A stretch of 64,000 bases of DNA from IMGVR_UViG_3300001782_000005:186001-250000, one strand, 5' to 3'; shown: positions 4,009 through 42,047, counted from the stretch's first letter. Numbers and translations: made by a program. The notes: generated from the sequence alone by a model not told the origin.

Positions 4009-4296
4009 ATGGCGAGAGAACATATCAGAGATTTAGTTAAAGATCCTCAATGGCAAAAAGTACGAGAGAGTTTGTTAGGTCAGTGGAAGGAGAGACCAGA
4101 GTGGTGTTGTGCCCAATTAAACAAATACTTGGGTTCAATTTCGAGTGCCTCTAATAAGAAAATTAGAATAGTCATGAATTATCTAACTGGAACCGGGTTC
4201 CGTACAGGCAGAATCACTCACTCCTGTATAACCAAAATAAGGACTCAATTATCTGCTGAAGTAAAGAAGAGAAAAGCAAAGAGAACTTGGGAATAA
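4009..4296 (+). CDS. Hypothetical basic protein
   Basis: Coupled ORF, GGGAG RBS. Confidence 0.6.
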   Translation: MAREHIRDLVKDPQWQKVRESLLGQWKERPEWCCAQLNKYLGSISSASNKKIRIVMNYLTGTGFRTGRITHSCITKIRTQLSAEVKKRKAKRTWE

Positions 4297-4322
4297 AACA
4301 AAAAAAATAATTGGGTTTAAAA

Positions 4323-4347
4323 AGAAAAAGGGTCAAATCCCCTTTTT
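4323..4347. terminator. Intrinsic terminator hairpin
   Basis: GAAAAAGGG-7nt-CCCTTTTTC between convergent genes. Confidence 0.55.
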
Positions 4348-4365
4348 CCCCTGGTGGTTCCAGGA

Positions 4366-4536
4366 TTAGATTTTTAGAGTCTCTGCGACTTCTATGACCC
4401 AGTCAGGTAGTTCATCCCTGTTGATTATCTGTCCATCAAGGTTCCACTTGACTGTGTATCCTCCAATATTACCCTTGAGGTAGTCGCCGCAGAAATCTAG
4501 AGAAATGGATTCTCCGCTCTCAAATACTGCTTGCAC
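4366..4536 (-). CDS. Hypothetical protein (start moved to GTG 4536)
   Basis: GGAGGTGA RBS upstream of GTG; removes most overlap with upstream gene. Confidence 0.45.
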   Translation of the reverse strand: MQAVFESGESISLDFCGDYLKGNIGGYTVKWNLDGQIINRDELPDWVIEVAETLKI

Positions 4537-4732
4537 GACTCTCACCTCCTTTGAATTTGTCAAAGGCCTTTTCAAAGAGGAAGTCGTCACACTTCTTACA
4601 GGAGCATACATGATCACGAATGAGTTGAGAAACTTCGTCGTCGAGTTCTCCGTTGAGATAACTCTCCATCTCAACTTTGATAAGTTGGCAACCAGCGTTT
4701 TGATCTAATTCTCCATCTAGTTCAAAAACCAT
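4520..4732 (-). CDS. zf-HC2 anti-sigma-factor-like zinc-binding protein
   Basis: C-x7-YLNGEL-x8-HVCSCKKC matches ZAS pattern; GGAGG RBS before ATG 4732. Confidence 0.65.
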   Translation of the reverse strand: MVFELDGELDQNAGCQLIKVEMESYLNGELDDEVSQLIRDHVCSCKKCDDFLFEKAFDKFKGGESRASSI

Positions 4733-4742
4733 GATAACCTCC

Positions 4743-4976
4743 TTATTTTTGATTTCCGTAATGTTTCTTGGTACTTTCAATTTGCTGCCAATAACCAGCA
4801 CCCTCTAGTGTCATTTTGAATTCTTCTTCTCTCTTCCTTCTCTTTCTTTTAGATTCGAATGGGTCACTATTTCTCCACATCCAAACTAAGTAGTAGAGGA
4901 TTGAGAGTGCTAGAAACGATACCACGATAATATCAAGCAAACTCATTCCTTTAAACATGGCCGTGTCCTCCTTCAC
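4743..4976 (-). CDS. Small single-TM protein
   Basis: N-terminal TM helix, basic tail. Confidence 0.5.
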   Translation of the reverse strand: MKEDTAMFKGMSLLDIIVVSFLALSILYYLVWMWRNSDPFESKRKRRKREEEFKMTLEGAGYWQQIESTKKHYGNQK

Positions 4977-8373: not shown

Positions 8374-9003
8374 TTAAATATCTGTCAACTTTTTTGCAAT
8401 ATCTTCTGTTAAGACTGGAGTAGAAACTGTTATTGGTTTTTTTCCCACTCCTTTGCACCTTTTGCACCTAATTACCTCCTTGATTTTTCCTGTATTTACT
8501 GGTCTTGATTTATTACCAGATCCTAAGCAAGACTTGCATTTTATTACTCTTTTTCTTTTGATAGTTTTTCTGTACTCGTATATTCCTTTACCCTCACAGG
8601 TTCGACAAGTCTTTGTACCAACCTTACCTGTGCCTTCACACCTCTTACATTTACTTCTGGCTATACCTGTGCCATCACATAATTTACATGGAAGCACAAG
8701 GATATCATAATGAAAATCGGGTCTGAATCCTTTTCCCCTACAATTCGGGCAAGGATTATTTATGGGGATTCTAATGTAATATCTAGATTTTTCAGCTAGT
8801 TGATCCTCGATTATTGCTGCTATTAGTGTATTTTTTGCAGTGATAATCTTCTCTGTCCCGTCCTTGTCTCCTTTTAGATCTTCGAGTAAATTGACAAAGG
8901 ATGCTATAATGATTTTCTCATCAAGTTCATCAATTTTATTAACGAGATCTAATGCCCATATAGCATTGTCTATCATATCTTGCTCAATACATGATTTAAT
9001 CAT
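8374..9003 (-). CDS. DnaJ-type zinc-finger repeat protein
   Basis: Six CxxCxGxG repeats; no J-domain HPD motif. Confidence 0.7.
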   Translation of the reverse strand: MIKSCIEQDMIDNAIWALDLVNKIDELDEKIIIASFVNLLEDLKGDKDGTEKIITAKNTLIAAIIEDQLAEKSRYYIRIPINNPCPNCRGKGFRPDFHYDILVLPCKLCDGTGIARSKCKRCEGTGKVGTKTCRTCEGKGIYEYRKTIKRKRVIKCKSCLGSGNKSRPVNTGKIKEVIRCKRCKGVGKKPITVSTPVLTEDIAKKLTDI

Positions 9004-9083
9004 GACCCCCTCCCCCCTCTATTCCATATTGTTACCTCCCATTCAAAAAAAGTTGCCCGAAGGCAACATACTATTCTGGAGCT

Positions 9084-9296
9084 CTAGAATATATAATCTA
9101 GAGTCTTCTTTCTCCCTTTATAGAATTTATAAATTGACCAACCAACCCAGATTACAGGTATGATATATACTGCGCGTCTGAAATGGTTTAGGAGGAGAAG
9201 GTCTATCATACATAGTATCCATATTACTATGCTGAGCAAAGCAATTGCACGTATTAGCGGATTAAATATTGTAAGTAATCTGAAAAATCTTCTCAT
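9084..9296 (-). CDS. Small two-TM protein
   Basis: Hydrophobic helices. Confidence 0.5.
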   Translation of the reverse strand: MRRFFRLLTIFNPLIRAIALLSIVIWILCMIDLLLLNHFRRAVYIIPVIWVGWSIYKFYKGRKKTLDYIF

Positions 9297-9348
9297 TTTA
9301 CTAACCCCCTTTCATAATTTTTAAAAACACAAACCCACCGCCTTCAAA

Positions 9349-9363
9349 TATTTATATATATAG
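9349..9363 (-). promoter_or_regulatory. Class-1 promoter-like motif (variant)
   Basis: TATTTATATATATAG upstream of 9296. Confidence 0.45.
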
Positions 9364-9405
9364 AAAAATTCTCAATTCTAAATGGGTATCTATTTTTATA
9401 GAAGG

Positions 9406-9419
9406 GAACAAAATAAAAA
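9406..9419 (+). promoter_or_regulatory. Class-2 promoter-like motif
   Basis: GAACAAAATAAAAA upstream of polymerase. Confidence 0.5.
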
Positions 9420-9436
9420 TTGATTTGTAATGGAGT

Positions 9437-12400
9437 ATGTTTATGTTTAGCATTAAGAACTCTTTTGCTGACTGTATGTCTTGCCCTCTCCTTGATGCCC
9501 CATCATGTATTCTTGAAACTAATTGTTCAGATAACCTAAAGGATATTGAAGTTGTATTTGTATCCGAAAATCCCGGAAAAAATGAGGTCAAGAAAAAGAG
9601 ACCTTTAATAGGAAGAGCGGGAAGAACATTCAGGAAACCATTTGATTTATATATTAGAGATAAATTCAAGTGGTTATTAACAAATTGTGTTTTATGTTGT
9701 ACGTTATTACCAGACGGTAAGACAGGTAACCCAACGCCAGAAATTATTGAGAGATGTAAAGAGAATGCTTTTAATATAATCGAAGCGTGTAGTCCGAAAT
9801 TGATTGTGGCTATGGGTGCAAGTCCAATGTCTGCTTTTGGTTTTGCAAAAACAGGTATAACTGATTTGAGAGGCCAAGTATTTAAATGGAGAGATTATGA
9901 TGTTCTCCTAACTGTTCATCCATCTTTTGTAAATAGAAATCAAAGTTATAAAGGTAAGTTTGAAAGGGATATACAAACTGCTGCAGTAATGCTTGGTGCA
10001 GAACTTGAAGTGAAAGCAGAGAAAGGGATGAATGCTGTAGGAACAGGAAAATATCGTTATAAAATTCCAGAGGAATTCTATAGTCCAGACTATAGACTTG
10101 TTGATGTCCAATTTTTACATAAGACAAATGAAGTTATACATATCTTTAGAGATAAGGATAATAATAAAATTTATCATAAGGAAAATGATGATTATTTCTG
10201 CTATAGAGTTCCAGAAGGTATTGAGAATAAACATCTTGTAGAATATGATAAATTGGAGATAATCAAAGTTCCATATAAACAAAAATCAGCACTAGATCCA
10301 GAAAGAACATACGAAGGTGATATAAGAATATCAGTAAAGTATGCCCAAGATTACTATCACTTTAGTAAGGGCGAACCATCAGAAAAAGAATTAAATATAA
10401 TGTTCTTGGATATTGAGACATACAGTAAAACAAAGGAATTTCCAAATGTTGAAGATGCGGATCATCCGATTTGTCTTATAACATACTATTATCATGGAAA
10501 ATACATAACATATGTAGTCGATAACAAGATTCTATTAAATGATAGAAATGCTCCAGATATTATAACAACTAAAGAGGATCCTATTCATATTTTTAAATCT
10601 GAGCGTGAAATGATCCTTAAATTTATAAAAGATTTGAGAACATTGGAACCAGACTTTCTCGTGGGTTGGAATGTAATTGGGTTTGACCTTTATTATATTT
10701 ATAACAGATGCAGAAAACTAAGAATAAAGCAAGAATCACTCTCAAAATTTAATGAAGTATCATTCTCAATTGATGAGAAAAGACAATATTGTGAGATTGC
10801 TGGGTTAGTAGTTCTTGATCTGCTTAGATTATATAGAAGCTTCACATTTACACAGAAAGAAAATTATCGTCTTGGAACAATCGCTCAGGAGGAGTTGGGA
10901 GAAGAGAAAACAGATGTTGGTGAGAACTTCTCGGAGAAATATGAGAAAGATATTAATGGAGCAATTGACTATAACATAAAAGACGTTGAATTGATTCTAC
11001 GAATAGATAATAAACTCCGACTTATAGTTTTAGAAAATGAAATTAGAAAAATTGGTAGCTCTAGTTTTGCTGGAGCATTTAGTAATCTTGGGAAACTTGA
11101 CAGCTTAGTGATTTCATTTTTGAAAGATAAAGGTTTTGCTTCAAGGAATGCAAATGTCCATAAAGTAAAAGAAGCTTCAATTCCTGGAGCATTTGTCAAG
11201 GAACCGAGAACAGGTATACATGAGTATATTGTTGATTTTGATTTCACATCCCTATATCCAAGTCTAATCTTAACCTATAACATTGGGATAAACACATTTG
11301 TTGCAAAGTTTAAAGATCATACGTTAGGATATGACTTTGTATATCAACTGGATAATCTCCCGGAAGAGTTCACTATAATCTATGATCCTGGTTTTCTTAA
11401 TAAAGAAATGACAGTCAAGAAAGAGGATTTTATTAAGAAGGTCAAAGATGCAAACCTTACATATACAATAAATGGATGTTTCTATAAACCACATGATAAA
11501 GAGGTTTCCGTTTATTCGGAGGTTTTGGACCATTTACTGATTTCTAGAAAAGAATATAAAGACAAAATGTTTGATGCCAAACAAGCAGGGGAAGATCATT
11601 TACATGATATGTACTATGGTCGTCAATTAGTTTACAAAGTTTTAGCTAACGCTTTATATGGAATTCTTACAAACCATTTCTTTAGATTCTACCATGACGA
11701 TCTCGGAAGTAGTATCACTCTAAGTGGTCAAGAAGCTTTGAAAACCTCAATCATTCATGGAAATAATTATGTTGATATGATTAAAAAGAAAGCTTCTAAA
11801 TACGAAGCTCCTGAACCACTGACAAAGCAAGAAATGTATGGTGATGTTACAAGAGATACTGAGTTTATCATTACGGGAGATACTGATAGTTTATTTGTAT
11901 CATTTGATGATATTGTAGATAAAAATAAATCAGAAGATGAGTTAATGAAGCAAATTGAAAGTTGGTGTGATGAAATTCAATTATTTTTGAACAATAAGAT
12001 CATTATGCCATTAGTTACTAATCATAATGTTCCTCTAGAAAGAAATCGTCTTGAGTTAAAGAATGAGCTAGTTATTAAGAGAGGTTTGTTTTTAGCTAAG
12101 AAACATTATGCAATTTATGTAACTTCGCAAGAGGGAAGGAAAACAGATGAAATAGTAAATATGGGTATTGCAACGAAACGAAGTGATTATCCGAGCTATA
12201 CAAAACAATCTCTAAGTGATTTATTGGATCTAATTCTGAAGTCAGAAGAAGTATCATTAAAGAAAATTATGGATTTTATTCACTCAAGAAAAACTTCATT
12301 TATTCATAAGATAAGAGCAGGTGATAAAAGAGTCGCTCGCCCTTCTGCATTTACGAGGAGATTAGATCATTATAAAAAAGTACCTCCTGGAGTAATCTCA

Positions 12401-12700
12401 ATGTTAAATTGGAATGAATTGGAGTATAAGATTTTTGATGTTGGTTCAAAAGGTTATCTATTCAAATTAAATGGCATAGACCTCATGAAAGCTCCTCCAG
12501 ACGTAGCTGAAAAATATAACCAAAAATTCTTAGCAAATGGTAGGAAATTGGACTATATATCTCTTCCAGATGAGGAAATATCTCTACCGTCATATTATGT
12601 AGTTGATGTTAGTGCAATGTTAAAATTTGCATGGGAGGATAGATTTAGTTTAATATTAGAACCAGTAATGAGTCCGAAGCAGGAACTAATGACAATCTAG
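9437..12700 (+). CDS. polB: Family B DNA polymerase with N-terminal family-4 uracil-DNA glycosylase domain
   Basis: UDG: CxxCPL, SENPG, GRAG, HPS; PolB: FLDIET exonuclease, DFTSLYPS, KVLANALYG, GDTDS. Confidence 0.93.
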   Translation: MFMFSIKNSFADCMSCPLLDAPSCILETNCSDNLKDIEVVFVSENPGKNEVKKKRPLIGRAGRTFRKPFDLYIRDKFKWLLTNCVLCCTLLPDGKTGNPTPEIIERCKENAFNIIEACSPKLIVAMGASPMSAFGFAKTGITDLRGQVFKWRDYDVLLTVHPSFVNRNQSYKGKFERDIQTAAVMLGAELEVKAEKGMNAVGTGKYRYKIPEEFYSPDYRLVDVQFLHKTNEVIHIFRDKDNNKIYHKENDDYFCYRVPEGIENKHLVEYDKLEIIKVPYKQKSALDPERTYEGDIRISVKYAQDYYHFSKGEPSEKELNIMFLDIETYSKTKEFPNVEDADHPICLITYYYHGKYITYVVDNKILLNDRNAPDIITTKEDPIHIFKSEREMILKFIKDLRTLEPDFLVGWNVIGFDLYYIYNRCRKLRIKQESLSKFNEVSFSIDEKRQYCEIAGLVVLDLLRLYRSFTFTQKENYRLGTIAQEELGEEKTDVGENFSEKYEKDINGAIDYNIKDVELILRIDNKLRLIVLENEIRKIGSSSFAGAFSNLGKLDSLVISFLKDKGFASRNANVHKVKEASIPGAFVKEPRTGIHEYIVDFDFTSLYPSLILTYNIGINTFVAKFKDHTLGYDFVYQLDNLPEEFTIIYDPGFLNKEMTVKKEDFIKKVKDANLTYTINGCFYKPHDKEVSVYSEVLDHLLISRKEYKDKMFDAKQAGEDHLHDMYYGRQLVYKVLANALYGILTNHFFRFYHDDLGSSITLSGQEALKTSIIHGNNYVDMIKKKASKYEAPEPLTKQEMYGDVTRDTEFIITGDTDSLFVSFDDIVDKNKSEDELMKQIESWCDEIQLFLNNKIIMPLVTNHNVPLERNRLELKNELVIKRGLFLAKKHYAIYVTSQEGRKTDEIVNMGIATKRSDYPSYTKQSLSDLLDLILKSEEVSLKKIMDFIHSRKTSFIHKIRAGDKRVARPSAFTRRLDHYKKVPPGVISMLNWNELEYKIFDVGSKGYLFKLNGIDLMKAPPDVAEKYNQKFLANGRKLDYISLPDEEISLPSYYVVDVSAMLKFAWEDRFSLILEPVMSPKQELMTI

Positions 12701-12774
12701 AAAAAAAAGGGAGTGGGCATCGTCACTCCCTATACTGAGTTGGGGGAAGGTAATTAAAATGCCTAACTCAGTAT
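12701..12774. terminator. Two adjacent hairpins between convergent genes
   Basis: GGGAGTG/CACTCCC and ATACTGAGTTGGG/CCTAACTCAGTAT. Confidence 0.6.
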
Positions 12775-12785
12775 TTCGATAATCA

Positions 12786-13028
12786 CTATTTTAGAAATTG
12801 TGGGATAAAGGCTATCACAATAATCGCACCTGCTAAATATCCACCAATTCCTATAAAGGTTCTGGTAAATGTTTTCCATGTAAAACCCTCTTTTATATCT
12901 GCTGCAAACAAACCAATTGCTAGTGCTGATATAATTAAGCTAGTAATTGCTAAACCAGAAGTTTTACATGATAATAGAGAAATCATTCCAATCAAACCTG
13001 TTAAAAAACATAAGAGATTTCTTTTCAT
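12786..13028 (-). CDS. Small membrane protein, paralog 1
   Basis: RNLLCFLTG; three TM segments. Confidence 0.6.
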   Translation of the reverse strand: MKRNLLCFLTGLIGMISLLSCKTSGLAITSLIISALAIGLFAADIKEGFTWKTFTRTFIGIGGYLAGAIIVIAFIPQFLK

Positions 13029-13037
13029 GCTCTTCTC

Positions 13038-13253
13038 CTATATTACTACGTAAGCAATAAGGTATCCGCCCATGAAGGATATGAACTCAACACCTTTACT
13101 TTTTACACCGATAAAAATACCTATCATAAGGAGAATAATCATTATTGGAACTTGAGAAACTCCAAACTTTGACCTGGCTATATTAATAATCAGAAAAATA
13201 ATTACTCCAGCAGCAAACGATAGTAAATTTCTAAAAATTGTTTTTATATCCAT
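13038..13253 (-). CDS. Small membrane protein, paralog 2
   Basis: RNLLSFAAG; three TM segments. Confidence 0.6.
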   Translation of the reverse strand: MDIKTIFRNLLSFAAGVIIFLIINIARSKFGVSQVPIMIILLMIGIFIGVKSKGVEFISFMGGYLIAYVVI

Positions 13254-13271
13254 TTATCTTCTCCTGAAGTA

Positions 13272-13308
13272 ATGGAATGGAGAGGATATCAATCCCTCTC
13301 CATTCCAT
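13272..13308 (-). terminator. Hairpin between paralogs
   Basis: ATGGAATGGAGAGG/CCTCTCCATTCCAT perfect 14-bp stem. Confidence 0.55.
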
Positions 13309-13314
13309 CTGGTT

Positions 13315-13578
13315 TTACAACATGACGAAGATGTAGGTAAGAACGAAACCACTTACGGTTGAAAAGACCTCAGCGGTCTTATTCATTCTTGCTACAAGGA
13401 CCCCTGTTCCTATGAGTATTACAGGACCAAAGAGTTCCGGAAACGGAACACCTTTCATTCCCATGTAGACAATCACTAGAAACACTGATACGCCAAGTGC
13501 AAAAGCAATAGCGTTCCTGAGAAGACCGCCTATGAAAATGAAAATGCTTTTGAAAAGTTTCTTTAGAAAATTCTTCAT
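13315..13578 (-). CDS. Small membrane protein, paralog 3
   Basis: RNAIAFALG; three TM segments; GGAGGA RBS. Confidence 0.6.
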   Translation of the reverse strand: MKNFLKKLFKSIFIFIGGLLRNAIAFALGVSVFLVIVYMGMKGVPFPELFGPVILIGTGVLVARMNKTAEVFSTVSGFVLTYIFVML

Positions 13579-29500: not shown

Positions 29501-30955
29501 ATGAAAGAACTCTTAATGGAATGCTACAGGACTACGAAGAAGATTTCCGGTATTGATCCATCAAAACCTGGAAATCTGAAGGCCGTACTTGTAGATGATT
29601 CCGCGTTTGAGGCTTATGTTACAAGTCTTGCTGAGTCCATTGAGGATAAGAAAGACCGCAAGAACTTCCTACAATTGGCTGAGAACACCAGGATCAACCT
29701 CCTGGAAAATTCAATGTTTCAGATCAACCCATATGAAACTTTGACTCTGCCAATTCTGCGCGTGTTTTATCCGAAGCTGATCGCTAAGGAACTTATCACT
29801 GTTTCGCCGATGGACAAACCGGAAACAATCAAGGCCTTCTTGACCGCCACCTTTTACAGACATGGTGACGCAACTGGGTACCCAGCACCCGCGCAGGCCA
29901 CTGATATTTCGCAGGGTCCAGCTGTTGGTACTCCTGTGGCAGCCACGATGCCTGTTCCAAGTAAGGCATACGATGTCCTGGCATTGATCGGTCTAACCAG
30001 CACAGAAGTTCACATTGAACGTGACTTCGAAATCACCGCTGTTAGCGCGGATGGTACTGCTTGGACCGAAGTTTCAATCATCCCTGCCGTTGAGGGTCAC
30101 TTCTCTGGCGGAGTAACAGTCACTGGTGTTGGTGATGACGTAATCTCCGGTAAAGTTGACTATCTCAATGGTACTGTTGACATTTCCAGTGCTACTGGAG
30201 TTGTCACCGTTATCAGGTTTACCTGCACTACTTCACTTGAAGAGAATAGGGTAAATCCATACGTCAAGCTGAATGTTGACAAGGTACGCCTCTATGCTAG
30301 GGATCGCCAGATCTCTGCAAACTGGACGATTAATATGGAGCAGGACATGAGAGCTCTGTTTGATCTGTCCATGCAGGCTGAAATCGTCAATATCCTTGGT
30401 CAACAGATCGCCCTTGACATTGATAGGGAGATTATCAATGCCTTGATTACGGGCAACACAAGGCTGAACCCAGCAACTCACCAGGATACCTTCAACCGTA
30501 CTCCACCTGTAGGATATACTTGGGGTACTAAGTATTGGCATGAGAATATTATTCCAGTTCTGAATGTGCTGTCTGCCCAGATCTACACAGACACTAATAT
30601 TGAAGCAGGTAACACCATTGCGGCCAACCCGCTTGATGTTGCTATTCTGGAAGATATTCAGACTTTCAATTACACTGGAACCTCAACTGTTGACGGTGAC
30701 TTCGGCTATCGCTCTGCTACTGTTGCAGGTGGCAAGTGGCGAGTTCTAACCAGTGCCGTTGTTCCACAAGGTACCATGGTCATCGTTTACAAACCAGTGG
30801 AAGAACTGAAGGTTGTCTACTACTACTGTCCATACGTTCCTGCCGTGTTGCATCCATACCCACTTGGATATACTCCATCTCTGACCATCTTGAGTCGTTA
30901 TGCGACTTCGTTGGTCAGGCCACTGGGTATTGCTACACTGACAATTGGAGCGTAA
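29501..30955 (+). CDS. Major capsid protein (T4 gp23-like)
   Basis: YPKLIAKELITVSPM, RQISANWTINMEQD...EIVNIL.QQIALDIDREII, YYCPYVP, TILSRYA. Confidence 0.9.
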   Translation: MKELLMECYRTTKKISGIDPSKPGNLKAVLVDDSAFEAYVTSLAESIEDKKDRKNFLQLAENTRINLLENSMFQINPYETLTLPILRVFYPKLIAKELITVSPMDKPETIKAFLTATFYRHGDATGYPAPAQATDISQGPAVGTPVAATMPVPSKAYDVLALIGLTSTEVHIERDFEITAVSADGTAWTEVSIIPAVEGHFSGGVTVTGVGDDVISGKVDYLNGTVDISSATGVVTVIRFTCTTSLEENRVNPYVKLNVDKVRLYARDRQISANWTINMEQDMRALFDLSMQAEIVNILGQQIALDIDREIINALITGNTRLNPATHQDTFNRTPPVGYTWGTKYWHENIIPVLNVLSAQIYTDTNIEAGNTIAANPLDVAILEDIQTFNYTGTSTVDGDFGYRSATVAGGKWRVLTSAVVPQGTMVIVYKPVEELKVVYYYCPYVPAVLHPYPLGYTPSLTILSRYATSLVRPLGIATLTIGA

Positions 30956-32134: not shown

Positions 32135-33298
32135 TCACCTAGAATGTACGATACCCAATTTTTCTTCTTCATATGGAGCGGATATCGGTAGTCCTTCTAA
32201 CTCCCTCCACTTCCTCCAGAAGTCAAGAAGAAATATTTTGAGCATATAGCGAATACTCATATTCTTTATATGGTTATCGCTTATGATATTACTCAAGACA
32301 AACTTCTTTGCTTCTTTTAGAGTTGGTTGTTTTTTCTGTTTTGCCAACCATTTCTTACATAACTCATATTTCTCAGAGTTAATGGTCAGGGTTCCCTCAG
32401 AATCATGGGGGTCTTTTTTATAGAGGATTTGTTTTTGCCTTAGAGCTCTTATGAAGAACTCCCTTCTTCCCTGCATTCTAGTTCTGTAATCATAGAAAAT
32501 AGGTGAATAAATATTATCTTGCTTACGAAGGAAACTGGTTGCCAGGACATGGAGTTTTGTTTTTAGGTATGGGGAATATGTTATACTCTTCTTTGTTTTG
32601 GTTTTACCAGACTTATCTGTATATTCCCTATCGACTAAGTGGTGAGATTTCTTACTTCTACCTTCTCCTCTGACAACCTCTTCACCTTCGATCTCATCTA
32701 GAGTCCATACCACGTCAAGACCAGCATAACTCCAAAATGCGGTGACATGGTTTGCCCTATGAGGATCAAGTTCGCTCACAAGAACGCCGCCCATTGTAGG
32801 ACCAACTCCTTCAAGTCCTTTCAGGAATTCTGTCCAGATTGGAAACTCATCAAGAAATTTCTCAATTTGCTTATTGATCTTGTACTCCTGTTTGACAAGA
32901 GATATATAGGTGTCAACAAATATAAACATAATTTCACCAGAGATTATACCAGGGTGTGCATCCTTCATAATCTTAGGAATCTCTTTCATGTTTATCACAA
33001 CACCGTCAGTGATTCTCTTGTATTCTCTAGAGATAAGTCCCATTAACTCTTTTGGGAGACCATAAAGACCTTCTTTCTTTTCTCCCGGTTTTAGTCCAAA
33101 GCGACGATATAGATTACCAAGAATCCTATTTCCCATCCTGATCCTATCCCTCTGAATATCGTCATATCCTCTAATTAATCCTCTCAATTCAATCTTTGGA
33201 CTCCACAACTCAGGTACAGGTTGCACAGGTATGCTAAAACCTCTGCCCTTGAAAACATCTGCGATTGATTTTATAGGTTCTAAAACTTCCTTAGCCAT
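32135..33298 (-). CDS. tasA: TasA-like Nop/IS110-related RNA-binding protein without recognisable nuclease domain
   Basis: Coiled coil LRGLIRGYDDIQRDRIRMGNR, then IWTEFLKGLEGVGPTMGG, AFWSYAGL, YSPYLKTKL, RYMLKIFLLD; no N-terminal DEDD RuvC, no IS110 SG catalytic loop, no HNH motif seen; abuts dual-repeat array. Confidence 0.8.
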   Translation of the reverse strand: MAKEVLEPIKSIADVFKGRGFSIPVQPVPELWSPKIELRGLIRGYDDIQRDRIRMGNRILGNLYRRFGLKPGEKKEGLYGLPKELMGLISREYKRITDGVVINMKEIPKIMKDAHPGIISGEIMFIFVDTYISLVKQEYKINKQIEKFLDEFPIWTEFLKGLEGVGPTMGGVLVSELDPHRANHVTAFWSYAGLDVVWTLDEIEGEEVVRGEGRSKKSHHLVDREYTDKSGKTKTKKSITYSPYLKTKLHVLATSFLRKQDNIYSPIFYDYRTRMQGRREFFIRALRQKQILYKKDPHDSEGTLTINSEKYELCKKWLAKQKKQPTLKEAKKFVLSNIISDNHIKNMSIRYMLKIFLLDFWRKWRELEGLPISAPYEEEKLGIVHSR

Positions 33299-37374: not shown

Positions 37375-37391
37375 AAAAAAAATTAAAGTTG

Positions 37392-37426
37392 CCCTACTGA
37401 CGAGCAGAGAAGACTCGTCAGTAGGG
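37392..37426 (-). terminator. Terminator of secreted-protein operon
   Basis: CCCTACTGACGAG/CTCGTCAGTAGGG 13-bp stem, T-tract shortly after on - strand. Confidence 0.65.
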
Positions 37427-37448: not shown

Positions 37449-38231
37449 TTACTCCGCTAAAGGCTTCAGAGCAAACATTTGAATCCAGGGTTTACTCCTA
37501 TATCCAGCCTCACCGCCGGAGAATCCGAAACCACCGGAACCAACACCACCACTGTTCTGATTGTTTTTGGCAGTCTCAATCCATGCCTGAGTGTAGCTAA
37601 AACCAACGCCCCACCCGAAGGCCTTGATTACACGAGAATAACCTTCTGCAGTCAGAAACAACGTTTTGGCTCCCATGTCTAGAGCGGAAAGAGCAGCAGC
37701 CGCCAATACCTCCATTGAGGTTGAGTCTACATTCTTGCTTGATACATAAATAAGACCAACCTGCTGAACGGGGTATGAAGGTCGCTTAATTATAATCTCA
37801 ATGGTATCCTCAGCAGCTTTCTCGTCCTTCTTCTTTATAGGAACTAAGGATTTCGCATTGATCTTGATCCTACCGCCTGCCATGGCCTCCAGTTCAGCAC
37901 GAGTCCACACCTTCTTGAAGAGCAACATAACGCCTGCTTTCTGGAAGTTGTAGTCCTCTGTGGGCTGACCGAAGTACTGTGGATATCCGGGGTAATTAAC
38001 ATCGCCCGGTACCGGGAAGCTTCTGGGAATCTCCGAACCATACGTAGTGATGGTTGCACTAGGACTCCCACCTATCTGAAGTTGCGACTGCTCATTGTTG
38101 CTAAGGTTCTGGTTATCAACTTCATTAGCGTTGGAGTTGTCACCATTTGCAATAGCATCAGCGAAAACAGCAGGCGCACTCAGCACCAAGCAGGAAAGTA
38201 GTGCGACCAGAATGAATAGCTTACGCCTCAT
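37449..38231 (-). CDS. Secreted protein, Asn/Gln-rich N-terminus, Gly/aromatic C-terminal hairpin
   Basis: Start moved to MRRKLFILVALLSCLVLSAPAVFA (GGAGG RBS). Confidence 0.7.
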   Translation of the reverse strand: MRRKLFILVALLSCLVLSAPAVFADAIANGDNSNANEVDNQNLSNNEQSQLQIGGSPSATITTYGSEIPRSFPVPGDVNYPGYPQYFGQPTEDYNFQKAGVMLLFKKVWTRAELEAMAGGRIKINAKSLVPIKKKDEKAAEDTIEIIIKRPSYPVQQVGLIYVSSKNVDSTSMEVLAAAALSALDMGAKTLFLTAEGYSRVIKAFGWGVGFSYTQAWIETAKNNQNSGGVGSGGFGFSGGEAGYRSKPWIQMFALKPLAE

Positions 38232-38253
38232 AGGGTCTTTCCTCCTTTCCTGC

Positions 38254-39120
38254 TTAGAGACCGCCGAGTCCCTCATTATAGGTGATGGACCCGTCCAATA
38301 CCGGGACCGATCCTGCGCTGTTGATGGTGAGTTTGGTATATGACTGAGATGCCTGTTGCTGGACTCCAGAAGCTCCAACAAGGACACCTTCGCCATCAAA
38401 CACTGGCCGCTGTACCTGCTCTTGTATGAACACATTGTTCGCTTCAAGATCAAGATCAGCATCACCAACCATGCTTACTGCAGCGCCGACACATGACTCA
38501 TGACCACCACTCTGCTGCATGGCCAAGAGAACAACATTTTCCATCAACAGTTCGCCAGCTATTCCATAAGTTGGCATCCAGTCAATGTCAATGTCTATGT
38601 CAGTGTCAGAATCGAAGTCAGCCTCGACCTCGGTTTCTGATTCTGCTTCTGCTTCAGAATCGGACATAGCAAGGGCACCAGCGCCAGCAACGGCTCCTGA
38701 ACCGCTCAGGGCACCAGCACCAGCTATTTCAATAGCTTCGCCCTCTCCGCTAGTATTTGCATTAGCGGTTGCATCACTGTCTCCAGTAGCGTTTGCATTT
38801 GCATCCGCATCCGAATCAGAAGTTGCGGTAGAGTCTGCAGTGGCATCGCTGCTAGCACTGTAACTCTCGTCGATGTTGATGTCTACAATCAACTGATCAT
38901 TGAACACAGGATTCCAGCTGAGACTGAGACTCTCAATTGAGAGATCAATCATGGACTGTTCGGCACAACAGGTTTCATGGTTGTTCCAAACAATACCATC
39001 AACTCCACTGGGTTGACCAATTGTCAGAGATGCATCGAGATCCTTGGGCGGATCAGCGAGAGACGGTACCGCAAAGGAGACCAGTGCAACAGCCAACAGT
39101 ATAGCTAAGACTTTCTTCAT
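38254..39120 (-). CDS. Secreted acidic Ala/Ser/Asp low-complexity protein
   Basis: Signal peptide MKKVLAILLAVALVSFAVPSLA; alternating beta-type pattern. Confidence 0.75.
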   Translation of the reverse strand: MKKVLAILLAVALVSFAVPSLADPPKDLDASLTIGQPSGVDGIVWNNHETCCAEQSMIDLSIESLSLSWNPVFNDQLIVDINIDESYSASSDATADSTATSDSDADANANATGDSDATANANTSGEGEAIEIAGAGALSGSGAVAGAGALAMSDSEAEAESETEVEADFDSDTDIDIDIDWMPTYGIAGELLMENVVLLAMQQSGGHESCVGAAVSMVGDADLDLEANNVFIQEQVQRPVFDGEGVLVGASGVQQQASQSYTKLTINSAGSVPVLDGSITYNEGLGGL

Positions 39121-39150
39121 GTCTTTTGCCTCCTTAATGTTTATGTAGGG

Positions 39151-39603
39151 TTAGTTAGTTGACGTTGATACAACTGAACTGGTGGATGTTTGTGTACTAG
39201 TTCCCGTTTGAACTCCGATATATCCGTTAGCTGCAAGACCAACTTGATTCTGCACATTGGTCTGATAAGCGTTAGCACCACCGGATGTAAACACACGAGT
39301 CTTATCTGTACAGTTGAGATCAGTTGTTGATTGGATTACCTGAATGACTTCCTGATCGGAAATCTGACTCATTTCTGCATCAGCGGGCATGGCCCAATAC
39401 TTAGCATCATAATCCAAACCGACATCTTCAGCTGTTACCGTAAGACCCTGAGCACGATTTTCAAGACGTGTGCTCTGATCGTACTCTTGATATATGACCT
39501 GCTTAGCATCCGTATTGGCATTGGTGGCACCATCGTCCGCATAGACGGAACTAGTGAGTACGAAGACCAACACGAGAACTAGAAAGACTATTGTCTTCCT
39601 CAT
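39151..39603 (-). CDS. Secreted Thr/Gln/Asn-rich protein
   Basis: Signal peptide ending VYA. Confidence 0.75.
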   Translation of the reverse strand: MRKTIVFLVLVLVFVLTSSVYADDGATNANTDAKQVIYQEYDQSTRLENRAQGLTVTAEDVGLDYDAKYWAMPADAEMSQISDQEVIQVIQSTTDLNCTDKTRVFTSGGANAYQTNVQNQVGLAANGYIGVQTGTSTQTSTSSVVSTSTN

Positions 39604-39635
39604 GTGGTCACTCCTTTCTCAGTGATCGGAGGTTC

Positions 39636-40622
39636 TTATCGAGGGACGTTACATTCTAACACACCAGCTGCAGTGAAACTGCTAACTGACCCTGCTTGGT
39701 AACCGCCTTGAACCTGGCCAGCCACAACACCGTCTCCAGCCCAACTAAGGGTGGTACCACGGTGAGTTTCGAAAGAGCAGTTTTCAGCATAGGATCCGCT
39801 CATGGCCAAGGTTTCTGACTTAGTCTTGGTCTCATCCTTGGTCTCGGTCACACTCTTGTCCCAGCTCTCTGACTTATCTTTGGTCTCAGTTACACTTTTA
39901 TCCCAAGATTCAGATGAGCTACCGGAACCTGAGAGATCGCCGGAGAAGGTGTGAGTATCTGTCTCGGTGACTGACTCTGACTTATTATAGTCACAGTCAG
40001 GGCAGTCAGAGTCTTCCTGAGTGTCGTTGTCAGTGAATGTCCCAGTTGAGGTTTCTGTCACAGTTTCCTCATCCGTACACTCTGCATTCGCAGCGATTTC
40101 AAATGAACCCTCACTGGAGGAGTCCTCATCGACTACTTTGGTCTCAGTCTTTGACTCGACGTAATCTTCATCGACAACCTTGGTCTTTTCCTTGGACTCG
40201 GTCTTCGTTTCATCATACTGCTTGTCGAACGACCAAGTACCATCTTTGGAACTTTCCATGGTGAAGTATTTGTCAATGTTGATTGAACCCTCACCCAAAG
40301 TGGCAAGTTGACCTTGACCATCAAACTGCATGGCCTCACCCTGAGCGCTCTGCATGGTGAAACCACCCACAACAGCATCTTCACAGTCTTCACAGTCGAT
40401 GGTTGCGGAGGTATCAGCCTCAAGCAGCATCTCTTTCTTGGATGATTGGAGCATTTCTCCACCGATAGTATCTCCACCCTCATTCTGAATGGCCTGGGCA
40501 CCCTGGAATTGCTCATCAGTCATGCCCTGGTAGAGTTCGGCCGAACCACTGATATCTGCCAGCGCCGGGCCGGCAAAAATCAGCAGAACGATGGAAAGTA
40601 ATACAATAACTTTCGTCTTCAT
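39636..40622 (-). CDS. Secreted Thr/Glu/Ser-rich protein with internal duplications
   Basis: Signal peptide ending ALA; ESWDKSVTETKD x2, TKVVDED x2, CxxC pairs. Confidence 0.75.
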   Translation of the reverse strand: MKTKVIVLLSIVLLIFAGPALADISGSAELYQGMTDEQFQGAQAIQNEGGDTIGGEMLQSSKKEMLLEADTSATIDCEDCEDAVVGGFTMQSAQGEAMQFDGQGQLATLGEGSINIDKYFTMESSKDGTWSFDKQYDETKTESKEKTKVVDEDYVESKTETKVVDEDSSSEGSFEIAANAECTDEETVTETSTGTFTDNDTQEDSDCPDCDYNKSESVTETDTHTFSGDLSGSGSSSESWDKSVTETKDKSESWDKSVTETKDETKTKSETLAMSGSYAENCSFETHRGTTLSWAGDGVVAGQVQGGYQAGSVSSFTAAGVLECNVPR

Positions 40623-40735
40623 GTCTTTGTTCCTCCTTTCAAAGGGGAATTTAATTAGTTTGAAAAGTAAATACCTCTACCTCTAAAACCTACTTATGAC
40701 CACCCCCTTCCATGTTTAGATTTGATCGCTGTTGA

Positions 40736-41278
40736 TCATTGAGAGAAGGATTGTTCCTTCTTGGGTTGTCTTACTTTATAATATGCATCACCAATAGCAA
40801 CTAAAGGAAGCCCTTGGTTATCATAAAGGATGGCTCTCAATTTTACAGTAGAACCAGGATCAACAGGACCATAGATGGTGACATAATTATTAAGTTTGCT
40901 AGTGGGTCCACTAACATACTCAACCTTCCTGGTGCGCCCCTTAAAGGGTTTAGACACGTCTAGCCACGATTGAACTTTATACTCAATGTTTTTCGGATTT
41001 TTGATCCAGGCATTGAGTGTTACGCCCTTGACATTCTCAGGAAGATACATTTTTTCGTTGACCTTGAAATAGATTGGATATGGTTCTAACTCCTCTCCTC
41101 CAAGATCTTTCATTATCCACCCTGCAGCATAATACTGAACCCTTATATCTACCTCTGGATCCGGGACCCTTAGATATTCTTGCTCATTACTCATAGGGTA
41201 TCCGTCGACCAAAACAGTCATATTTGGCGCACAGGAGACAGCAACAAAAATAAGTAACACATACATCTTACGCCACAT
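40736..41278 (-). CDS. Lipoprotein
   Basis: Short signal peptide with lipobox-like VAVSC. Confidence 0.65.
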   Translation of the reverse strand: MWRKMYVLLIFVAVSCAPNMTVLVDGYPMSNEQEYLRVPDPEVDIRVQYYAAGWIMKDLGGEELEPYPIYFKVNEKMYLPENVKGVTLNAWIKNPKNIEYKVQSWLDVSKPFKGRTRKVEYVSGPTSKLNNYVTIYGPVDPGSTVKLRAILYDNQGLPLVAIGDAYYKVRQPKKEQSFSQ

Positions 41279-41302
41279 AGGCGTCCTCCTTCCATTTTTT
41301 TG

Positions 41303-41932
41303 CTATCTCGGTTGTACTTCGTTTCTTGGACTACCCGTTGATGGTGAGGATGCATAAGAACCGTTGCTGCCCTGGTTTGGTTGAGATGAACTATTTACAG
41401 ATTGACCATTAGATGGTCCACTACCCGGGTAACCTTTTGGGCAACCTGGACATACTACTTGTACTTGTGGGCAACAGGTAGTATGGCGTTCAAGCCAAAT
41501 TTTGGTTATTCCTCCAACCTCTTGATGATCGGTTTTGGGATATTGAAGAGAAAACAGTTCATCCCTTGATTCTTCAACCTCGTCGTCATCTTCGGATTTT
41601 GGTTGATCTATGCATCTCGCTCGCATTGCTTGATCATATTGAGAGAGTGCAACCCCAGCCTTTTCTTTCTTGTCAATCGCTGCGAAGACTTGATCGCAGG
41701 TTGGAGTATTGTCAACGACAATCTTAGTGTCGATATCCGGGTCTTTGGTGTCATATTTGCCTGGTGGCAAACTTATGTTCTCGCCCGGATTGTCCATGGT
41801 AGGACTGTCTGCTTTCAATGGCAACTCAATCAACTCTATACCTGGGTCATGTACATTGTCTTCGGCTAAGGTAAAAGTTGATATTAATGCAATTGAAAGA
41901 ATGATAAAAAATACTAGTAAGATTCTCCTCAT
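41303..41932 (-). CDS. Secreted/membrane-anchored Cys-containing protein
   Basis: Signal peptide ending TLA; Ser/Pro/Gly tail. Confidence 0.65.
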   Translation of the reverse strand: MRRILLVFFIILSIALISTFTLAEDNVHDPGIELIELPLKADSPTMDNPGENISLPPGKYDTKDPDIDTKIVVDNTPTCDQVFAAIDKKEKAGVALSQYDQAMRARCIDQPKSEDDDEVEESRDELFSLQYPKTDHQEVGGITKIWLERHTTCCPQVQVVCPGCPKGYPGSGPSNGQSVNSSSQPNQGSNGSYASSPSTGSPRNEVQPR

Positions 41933-41966
41933 ACACTACCTCCTTTCATTTGTGGAAAAACTATAT

Positions 41967-42045
41967 AAAAAATTGGGTGGGGTAACTCCAATGGCGCGGT
42001 GCCGGAATTAATGGTTATGAATCGGGGAGCCCCCACCAATTTTTT
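41967..42045. other. Long imperfect inverted repeat (terminator/attenuator) upstream of secreted operon
   Basis: AAAAAATTGG.GTGGGG...CCCCACCAATTTTTT arms. Confidence 0.5.
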
Positions 42046-42047
42046 CG

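Follow-up and report, generated by a model that had tools for sequence, protein, structure and literature searches.

What might a phage gain from a run of six genes that all appear to encode exported proteins and that match no known family? The question is raised by the genes here called g1 to g6, which lie tightly spaced on the minus strand (gene spacers of 22-113 bp) from position 41932 to 37449 of a 64,000-nucleotide stretch of a virus genome (IMGVR_UViG_3300001782_000005, bases 186001-250000), hereafter the window. A first-pass annotation of this DNA had recognised no known family among the six products, and this held, as searches of Pfam, PHROGs and NCBIfam gave no family match and the PADLOC defence models gave none at E ≤ 0.1; the only rows with low E values paired the Ser-Asp repeats of staphylococcal adhesins with an acidic tract of g5, far below the cut-offs. 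The six genes are better described as an instance of a widespread, undescribed three-part envelope module of large sediment phages, in which a lipoprotein (g2) and a predicted hairpin-ring protein (g6) accompany exchangeable proteins that are probably their cargo.

A lipoprotein and g6 recur around differing putative cargo proteins

A profile of g6 (residues 50-260) searched against 1.84 billion representatives matched 313 clusters at E ≤ 1e-3 and 176 at E ≤ 1e-10; a word-based search with the single g6 protein reached only relatives of 65-100% identity, in sister phages, and the profile version of the homologue search found only unnamed metagenome proteins without Pfam domains. The members share a plan in which a signal peptide is followed by a linker that is rich in N/Q/G and differs greatly in length, the motif R-x-F...Y-P-G-x-P-x-Y-F-G, an alpha/beta domain and a hairpin tail, and the tail motifs G-W-G-I-G, G-G-x-G-[YI]-S and P-W are common to the family by profile search, alignments and per-column conservation. 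The signal of g6 ends in an A-x-A-type site, and the cysteine in its h-region is not conserved, being missing in the protein P0013, so that there is no conserved lipobox. No Pfam match beyond noise was found for 129 family members, a search of the g6 sequence against PDB gave nothing below E 0.046, and tblastn of three family members against GenBank phages gave no match, from which blank result the phage members appear so far to be confined to uncultured phages. Judged by its sequence, g6 is a member of an undescribed family of its own.

Gene neighbourhoods were surveyed at every locus with usable flanks, which gave 16 independent loci, 14 of them in phages (the clade of the window, L006, L007, L008, L009, L071, L075, L076, L078, L079, L087, L088, L090 and L091) and two in bacteria (L084 and L089). 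The gene directly 5' of g6 encodes a signal-peptide protein of 176-400 amino acids (aa) in all 16, with a G/A/S/T/N/D/Q content of 54-63% in 15 and of 47% in L008, and at 10 of the 16 loci this low-complexity gene is itself preceded by a lipoprotein gene (166-239 aa). At least four sequence families with no relation to each other are represented among these upstream proteins, g6 remaining recognisable throughout, and ten cargo proteins from loci other than the window gave no match to Pfam and none to Curlin_rpt. As the lipoprotein and g6 recur with differing proteins between them, the lipoprotein and g6 constitute the constant part of the module and the proteins between them the variable part. 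Weak matches of the g6 hidden Markov model (HMM) to upstream cargo had made these proteins candidate g6 homologues, but they were rejected because the alignment covered signal-peptide similarity only.

The phage loci are diverse. L008, L009, L090 and L091 are T4-like phages in which g6 lies directly upstream of gp32, among replication genes; the L087 contig measures 330 kb, and at L088 there is a jumbo phage bearing RNA polymerase genes and, like the window, two large and two small cargo genes. L007 is a 255,557-bp contig (JBHLRM010000001.1, GCA_048882605.1) filed under a 'Candidatus Thorarchaeota' metagenome-assembled genome (MAG); it carries genes for phage RNA polymerase beta/beta', baseplate V, PAAR and Amidase_2 together with the lipoprotein-cargo-g6 trio, and gives the impression of a jumbo phage that ended up in an archaeal bin. 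The remaining loci (L006, L071, L075, L076, L078 and L079) are on further virus-like contigs, L071 to L079 being IMG/VR records. A peptidoglycan hydrolase adjoins the cassette in three jumbo phages (Amidase_2 in L007, Peptidase_M15_3 in L088 and SLT in L087). At L078 a 259-aa exported protein with a PEP-CTERM-like hydrophobic/basic tail is encoded two genes upstream of the cargo gene (8715-9494, minus strand); such tails mark exosortase substrates of diderm bacteria.

A synteny search of bacterial genomes, which the first-pass annotation had suggested, recovered the module in two bacterial chromosomes. One of these (L084) lies on a contig of 1.42 Mb from a MAG that bears the label 'delta proteobacterium', where the module (9849-13341, at about 1.16 Mb) forms an islet of lower GC content (0.44-0.51 vs 0.55-0.59) with a transposase-like open reading frame (ORF) and the reverse transcriptase of a group II intron at its flanks, and where both cargo proteins start with C-I-S-C. 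The other (L089, from an NCBI assembly) has Rnf/Nqr genes and valyl-tRNA synthetase around a module that stands directly downstream of a LuxR-type response regulator. Genomes of GTDB were scanned with a degenerate DNA pattern, and only one (L036) of the 58 stretches obtained was real after HMM screening.

Among close relatives, the sister phage L003 has all six genes in unchanged order and one exported ORF more, and L005 carries g4-g5-g6. The extra ORF of L003 (3739-4173, plus strand), which encodes 144 aa rich in T/P/S/G, lies 5' of g1 (4226-4870 in that phage) and is missing in the window, so that cassette content varies even among close relatives. Identity to L003 is 79% for g2 and 77% for g6, and 43%, 33%, 32% and 34% for g1, g3, g4 and g5 respectively (compared to 64-86% for flanking genes and 68% for the tail fibre). 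By these identities the cassette is made up of two evolutionary tiers, g2 and g6 being constant and g1 and g3-g5 diverging fast.

Predicted fold and assembly of g6

An AlphaFold (AF2) model of g6 based on 9 close sequences had a predicted local distance difference test score (pLDDT) of 36, and only the 129-sequence alignment gave a confident model (pLDDT 83.7, core 96-98). The model is a beta-beta-alpha-beta-beta domain whose last two strands (residues 190-220 and 226-257) are prolonged into one hairpin of ~30 residues per strand. Across the 129 members strand 1 of the hairpin conserves G206 W207 G208 I209 G210 L/F211 x Y213, with W207, I209, L/F211 and Y213 on one face and G206, G208, G210, N/S212 and T/S214 on the other; strand 2 conserves G233 G234 x G236 Y/I237 S238, with P248 W249 at the base, and the tip is polar and rich in G/S/D/N/Q. 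The distal third is predicted to bear a hydrophobic belt of 8-9 residues near the tip and a glycine-lined opposite face, a size that would fit an outer membrane.

Structural matches to residues ~120-258 were obtained for RcsF, a DUF74 protein and FvfA (Z 7.4-8.0, FvfA at 7.8) and for DUF1471 proteins (Z 5.4-6.8); the RcsF match has an rmsd (root-mean-square deviation) of 3.3 over 78 residues at 14% identity, and its Z of 8.0 is to be read beside the Z of 7-8 that is typical for the best match of unmatched models. We regard the globular part of g6 as an RcsF/dodecin-like alpha/beta domain, which is modelled as a confident fold. The Foldseek matches in PDB were only to the stems of beta-toxin, alpha-haemolysin, aerolysin and lysenin (E 0.013-0.2, template modelling (TM) score ≤ 0.14), and the hairpin alone superposes on the aerolysin membrane hairpin over 45 residues (rmsd 2.7, Z 2.1-2.2). 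The comparison with beta-pore proteins that the first-pass annotation had put forward thus found a weak likeness in the stem hairpin and an unrelated cap domain. There was no g6 match in BFVD at E ≤ 0.001, a fold search of the ESM Atlas returned nothing but unnamed clusters and a single PDZ family (TM by query 0.33-0.39), and two feature searches of the same atlas gave unnamed clusters only.

For the oligomer, four copies of g6 residues 85-260 were predicted together from a custom alignment, alongside three controls, and the resulting ipSAE was 0.79 vs 0.00 for the best of the three controls. At least 86% of contacts agree between runs, and the partner pLDDT is at least 77. In calibration the mark was reached by 20/30 solved pairs and 1/23 single chains, a guide that is only rough here as a custom alignment and four copies were used. 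The interface recurs from copy 3 to 4 to 1 and places residues 92-117, 171-173 and 237-245 against 123-129, 155-164, 194-207 and 249-255 of the neighbour; within it, residues 237-245 face 199-207 of the adjoining copy, and hence strand 2 pairs with strand 1 of the neighbouring copy. This suggests that g6 may form a head-to-tail oligomer with paired hairpins, that is, a ring with a shared beta-barrel. One product had earlier been described as having an N/Q-rich start and a Gly/aromatic hairpin reminiscent of a pore or secretion subunit; both features are those of g6 and are conserved across its 129 members, and the likeness is strengthened by the confident fold, the predicted head-to-tail homo-oligomer and the conserved hydrophobic/glycine alternation.

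The lipoprotein g2 and the putative cargo proteins

A word-based homologue search with g2 found only relatives of 72-87% identity. A lipoprotein homologous to g2 is encoded at L007 in a jumbo phage (27% identity, E 7e-15), lipoproteins of similar size occupy the equivalent position at L008, L071, L087, L088 and L091 and at the bacterial L084 and L089, and the 9 members of the g2 family matched no Pfam family. In the module g2 is the conserved companion of g6, and its candidate role is that of a pilot or anchor at the outer membrane.

Of the faster-evolving products, g1 has two Cys pairs (C-C and C-P-G-C) and an S/N/Q/P-rich tail and is putatively an accessory or cargo protein, g3 and g5 are putative cargo, and g4 is putatively cargo or a minor subunit. 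Alternating runs of small and charged residues had been noted in three products; they are present in g3 (T/E/K/D/S tracts at ~residues 135-270, beside two C-x-x-C motifs) and in g5 (an acidic tract at ~residues 88-180, of S/D/A/N/T and then I-D-I-D-I-D), but g4 has a short S/T-rich tail only. A three-way alignment of g5 keeps the N- and C-terminal parts, while the central tract alters its composition and goes from ~100 down to ~35 residues. An origin of the tracts as recent DNA tandem repeats was rejected, only short hexamer runs having been found. In the g5 orthologues (L003 7200-7976 and L005 477-1175) the tract reads V-D-V-D-V-N-K-T repeated, which contains D-x-N-x-T, a bacterial N-glycosylation sequon.

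A G-[VY]-Q motif lies 20-37 residues from the C-terminus of g3, g4 and g5 and their orthologues (G-Y-Q at 22 residues in g3, G-V-Q at 21 in g4 and at 37 in g5). It is found in 8/8 of these proteins, a count that 0/2000 shuffles reach, and is rare elsewhere in them.

Gene layout, base composition and codon usage

Export signals were scored by a simple in-house heuristic (K/R-rich n-region, hydrophobic core of at least 10 residues and A-x-A-like site), and all six products show these features, with a lipobox in g2. The heuristic flags 12 of the 74 non-overlapping window ORFs of at least 100 aa, and six of the 12 are the contiguous run from g1 to g6. AGGAGG-like sites stand 6-10 nt 5' of all six starts, and g6 is followed by a hairpin resembling an intrinsic terminator (Table 1), the inner part of which was also recovered by a consensus scan. 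The mechanical ORF of g6 begins with a TTG at 38468 and overlaps g5, but the ATG at 38231 was taken as the start because it has its own GGAGG site and the signal peptide opens there. Sigma-70-like matches in the region were no commoner than in shuffles, and no promoter was identified. We propose that the six genes form one transcription unit, since consecutive ORFs with export signals, each with its own ribosome-binding site (RBS), are separated by short spacers, share one terminator and keep the same order in L003. The first-pass picture of six co-oriented genes for exported proteins, one with a lipobox, with strong RBSs, a closing terminator and a GC content above that of the flanks in 37450-40620, therefore stands, and the GC content of that part (0.484) is the highest among all 3.17-kb windows (mean 0.374, standard deviation 0.032).

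The GC content at third codon positions (GC3) of g3, g5 and g6 is 0.43-0.51 (0.51 in g3) compared to 0.20-0.24 in bulk phage genes, with the major capsid gene at 0.47. Relative to the bulk genes, the operon and the major capsid gene shift their codon usage in a correlated way (r = 0.72), and this capsid-like codon split within the phage genome is shared by this cassette only. We read the codon usage as host-adapted for high expression, the alternative being recent transfer from a GC-richer genome. High GC content as proof of foreign origin is weakened by the capsid-like codon shift, and because this shift matches that of the capsid gene, host-adapted codons explain the high GC content better than foreign origin alone.

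Table 1. Positions and properties of the cassette genes, associated signals and other features of the window.
Feature	Position	Strand	Description
g1, 209 aa	41303-41932	-	predicted exported protein; ORF and translation
g2, 180 aa	40736-41278	-	lipoprotein, lipobox A-V-S-C, Ala at +2
g3, 328 aa	39636-40622	-	predicted exported low-complexity protein
g4, 150 aa	39151-39603	-	small predicted exported protein, S/T-rich tail
g5, 288 aa	38254-39120	-	predicted exported protein; alternating acidic tract
g6, 260 aa	37449-38231	-	signal peptide, N/Q-rich linker, alpha/beta domain, Gly/aromatic hairpin
Intrinsic-terminator-like hairpin	37380-37426	-	13-bp perfect stem (37426-37414 / 37404-37392), 9-nt loop, T-rich tail; 3' of g6
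Spacer 5' of g1, 115 bp	41933-42047	-	presumed promoter site
IS110-family transposase	32135-33298	-	PF02371; phrog_4285; between head and tail-fibre modules; 83% identical in L003
Major head gene	29501-30955	+	GC3 0.47 vs 0.20-0.24 for other phage genes
Prepilin-type N-terminal methylation motif protein, 135 aa	1956-2363	-	PF07963, 26.7 bits vs cut-off 21.2; type IV pilin/pseudopilin-like
Signal-peptide protein, 186 aa	1363-1923	-	adjoins pilin-like gene
ROS/MUCR zinc-finger protein, 234 aa	36014-36718	+	N-terminal match 28.3 bits vs cut-off 25.4
Repeat protein, 191 aa	36799-37374	-	about five ~27-residue repeats, W-A-Y-E-Y-C-R-like core; no Pfam match; 82% conserved in L003

The source phage and the surroundings of the cassette

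The source record is a 277,131-bp virus genome with direct terminal repeats, and the cassette is surrounded by genes for a family-B DNA polymerase, a DnaB-like helicase, the portal, the major head protein, an IS110-family transposase and tail fibres; from its length, its terminal repeats and these phage genes it is therefore a jumbo phage. A DNA similarity search against GenBank phages gave no match. Public runs with this DNA (4,601 letters compared) come from marine sediment and seawater metagenomes, in which it occurs as low-depth, identical DNA contigs, and neither RNA runs nor variants were found among the read matches. The earlier proposal of a phage-borne extracellular fibre, amyloid or surface-layer system is thus upheld as regards its carriage by a phage (the 277-kb genome with terminal repeats) but not as regards a fibre, amyloid or surface layer, as there were no matches to curlin, Fap, ENA or TasA.

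The cassette and the transposase gene share an accessory, mostly minus-strand island. A ROS/MUCR-type gene stays beside the cassette in the relatives (L003 9533-10291 and L005 2236-2922). Regulators of the Ros/MucR type control surface polysaccharides in alphaproteobacteria, and by analogy the phage protein may be a regulator linked to the cassette. The pilin-like gene near the start of the window is a hint that the host may be a diderm possessing a type IV pilus or type II secretion system (T2SS) machinery.

Possible roles of the cassette

The reading that we tentatively favour, and consider quite possible rather than probable, is that the cassette encodes a mobile outer-membrane channel and lipoprotein machine that exports abundant, fast-evolving surface cargo, following a curli-like logic with unrelated parts. 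The six genes, on one transcript, would provide the infected cell with a small envelope machine and its cargo. Exported g6 subunits would assemble side by side into a ring, each giving one long Gly/aromatic hairpin to a common beta-barrel, and the g2 lipoprotein would pilot or anchor this ring at the outer membrane, a location that the conserved hairpin belt and the lipoprotein partner point to. The g3, g4 and g5 proteins, and perhaps g1, would then traverse or dock onto the ring, and an abundant layer or fibre on the cell surface would be built from them. The phage might benefit from a host surface that is re-coated, for example by excluding other phages (superinfection exclusion), masking receptors or aggregating cells, and the cargo would be swapped and quickly diversified while the machine stayed constant. 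A bolder form of this proposal, which we regard as rather doubtful, is that g6 and g2 represent an unrecognised class of outer-membrane secretion or assembly machine, homologous to none that is known and operating in the manner of type VIII secretion, with an RcsF-like domain bearing a single long hairpin per subunit, spread among large phages of sediment bacteria as a mobile cassette with exchangeable, rapidly diversifying cargo that re-coats the infected cell; it would thereby supply the substrate logic that is missing from the phage CsgG/CsgF clusters.

Several points weigh against an export machine of this kind. Where the proteins are located, how they oligomerise and whether they are secreted are matters of prediction throughout; the four-copy complex lies beyond the range of the calibration and gives neither a ring size nor a closed barrel, and the best fold matches of g6 (Z 7.4-8.0) are only at the level common for unmatched models. 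That g1-g5 form a fibre or coat is a guess from their composition, the other cargo families lack the G-[VY]-Q tail, and the orthologues that carry it are not independent observations. The diderm host is suggested only by the lipoprotein, the pilin-like gene and the two bacterial loci. A position beside peptidoglycan hydrolases in three jumbo phages fits lysis too, and a single amphipathic hairpin per subunit is also a hallmark of secreted beta-pore-forming toxins.

The main alternative is a lysis or envelope-permeabilising device, in which a g6 ring placed by g2 would open the outer membrane late, replacing spanins or timing lysis; we think this unlikely, and assign as little likelihood to the role that the low-complexity proteins would then have as plugs, regulators or periplasmic spacers. 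Besides the adjoining hydrolases, it is supported by the combination of an outer-membrane lipoprotein with a pore-like partner, by the lack of any spanin-like PHROG among the six products, and by the fact that the same lysis-type role has already been hypothesised for the CsgG/CsgF pores of phages (PMC9004378). However, the capsid-like codon usage implies bulk production, which would be unusual for lysis triggers, the cassette adjoins gp32 among replication genes and not lysins in four T4-like phages, bacterial chromosomes carry it too, in one case immediately behind a LuxR-type response regulator, and several large, rapidly diversifying cargo genes would be left unexplained. Much the same hairpin could serve a secreted beta-barrel pore-forming toxin or bacteriocin-like weapon, with g6 being released to insert into other cells and its neighbours acting as accessory or immunity factors. 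This agrees with one hairpin per subunit in a head-to-tail oligomer and with PDB matches, weak ones, to toxin stems only, but is very unlikely given that the cap is unrelated to any pore-forming-toxin family, that ~45 hairpin residues align (Z about 2), that no Pfam toxin families are found in the 129 members, that the cassette is without an immunity-like membrane protein, and that the lytic T4-like and jumbo phages show a strict linkage of g6 with a lipoprotein and with exported proteins of low complexity.

If the structural matches to RcsF, FvfA and the DUF1471 proteins were taken at face value, and with them the RcsF-like layout of a signal, a disordered linker and a small alpha/beta domain, g6 might be a periplasmic or outer-membrane mimic of an envelope sensor, or a stress modulator, whose domain on a disordered tether disturbs host stress signalling and makes no pore. 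We consider this highly improbable, because such Z values are typical best scores for unmatched models and are accompanied by no RcsF or DUF1471 sequence match, because RcsF is without a 30-residue hairpin or homo-oligomer interface, and because g6 is without a conserved lipobox. The six genes could, lastly, stand together by chance and be unrelated small ORFs for exported or low-complexity proteins, as might collect in a variable phage island that holds a transposase and in which four of the six genes diverge very fast; this is barely credible, as gene order is kept in L003 and partly in L005, the lipoprotein/low-complexity/g6 trio recurs in distant phages and bacteria, and six consecutive signal peptides are far above the background rate of the window.

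If the cassette does encode a channel with its lipoprotein and cargo, three unannotated protein families would constitute a widespread mobile envelope machine by which large phages alter the host surface, and the few outer-membrane secretion routes on record would be joined by a new channel architecture. It would bear on why lytic phages (such as the marine myophages with CsgG/CsgF) carry outer-membrane pores. With two conserved genes and their cargo, it would also be a simple system, open to testing, in which to study how phages remodel the surface of sediment bacteria. Nanopore engineers, too, might take an interest in a ring whose subunits of about 20 kDa contribute one hairpin each. Were the cassette a lysis device instead, it would still be a new solution to outer-membrane disruption.

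Comparison with known systems

Spanins pair a small o-spanin lipoprotein with a coiled-coil i-spanin, whereas here g2 has 180 aa and g6 is modelled as an alpha/beta domain with a hairpin; none of the six products matched spanin PHROGs or has an N-terminal anchor with a long helical periplasmic domain. The beta-pore toxins (aerolysin, alpha-haemolysin/leukocidins and lysenin) resemble g6 in having a long Gly-rich amphipathic hairpin on a globular domain and the head-to-tail hairpin pairing that is predicted for g6, but the g6 cap is unrelated and g6 is tied to a lipoprotein and cargo-like genes, and no Pfam toxin family was found in g6 itself. RcsF and FvfA are outer-membrane lipoproteins, and these and the DUF74/DUF1471 proteins are without the extended hairpin and predicted ring of g6, for which neither Pfam nor NCBIfam gave a match to the RcsF/DUF1471 sequence families.

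The MspA porin may be counted as an architectural analogue among the beta-barrel pore formers, which have one or two hairpins per subunit. In the secretins (T2SS, type III secretion and type IV pili) assembly of the outer-membrane ring depends on a small pilotin lipoprotein, and pIV of the filamentous phages is a phage-encoded precedent; g6, however, is far smaller (260 aa) and without N-domains, and no Secretin domain (PF00263) was found in it or in the 129 members. The Fap operon (fapABCDEF) likewise has six genes for exported proteins, including an outer-membrane channel and repeat-rich fibre subunits, but FapF is a monomeric or trimeric 12-stranded barrel and not a hairpin ring, the cassette is without a C39-like peptidase, and no match to Fap families was found in Pfam or NCBIfam.

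Closer in setting are the CsgG/CsgF pore clusters of pelagimyophages (HTVC008M group) and of the Methylophilales phage Melnitz, the function of which is open (PMC7029224, PMC9004378). These too are pore cassettes of large T4-like marine phages, placed in a variable region beside small exported proteins that are hypothetical, and T4-like phages likewise account for four of the g6 loci. They differ in being true CsgG/CsgF homologues without recognisable fibre subunits, whereas the g6 cassette has no homology to them, is in every case accompanied by a large low-complexity protein and derives from phages of sediments.

With curli (type VIII secretion) itself, which consists of the lipoprotein channel CsgG, the accessories CsgE/CsgF and the subunits CsgA/CsgB, there is no sequence or detectable fold relationship: CsgG (PF03783) was not found in g6 (E ≤ 1), in the 129 family members or in the whole 277-kb phage, though control genomes scored, the CsgG fold is absent from the g6 structure-search lists, and the cargo is without curlin repeats (Curlin_rpt, PF07012; none in g1-g5 at E ≤ 1). 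CsgG is also itself lipidated and has two hairpins per protomer, compared to a lipoprotein (g2) separate from g6 and one hairpin per g6. The likeness is one of organisation, in that both have Sec-exported parts, involve a lipoprotein and encode low-complexity subunits beside a channel, the roles in the cassette being predicted ones. The csg operons depend on CsgD, and the cassette copy of one bacterial chromosome (L089) follows a LuxR-type regulator; CsgG builds an oligomeric barrel from hairpins carried on an alpha/beta periplasmic domain, and g6 is predicted to do the same.

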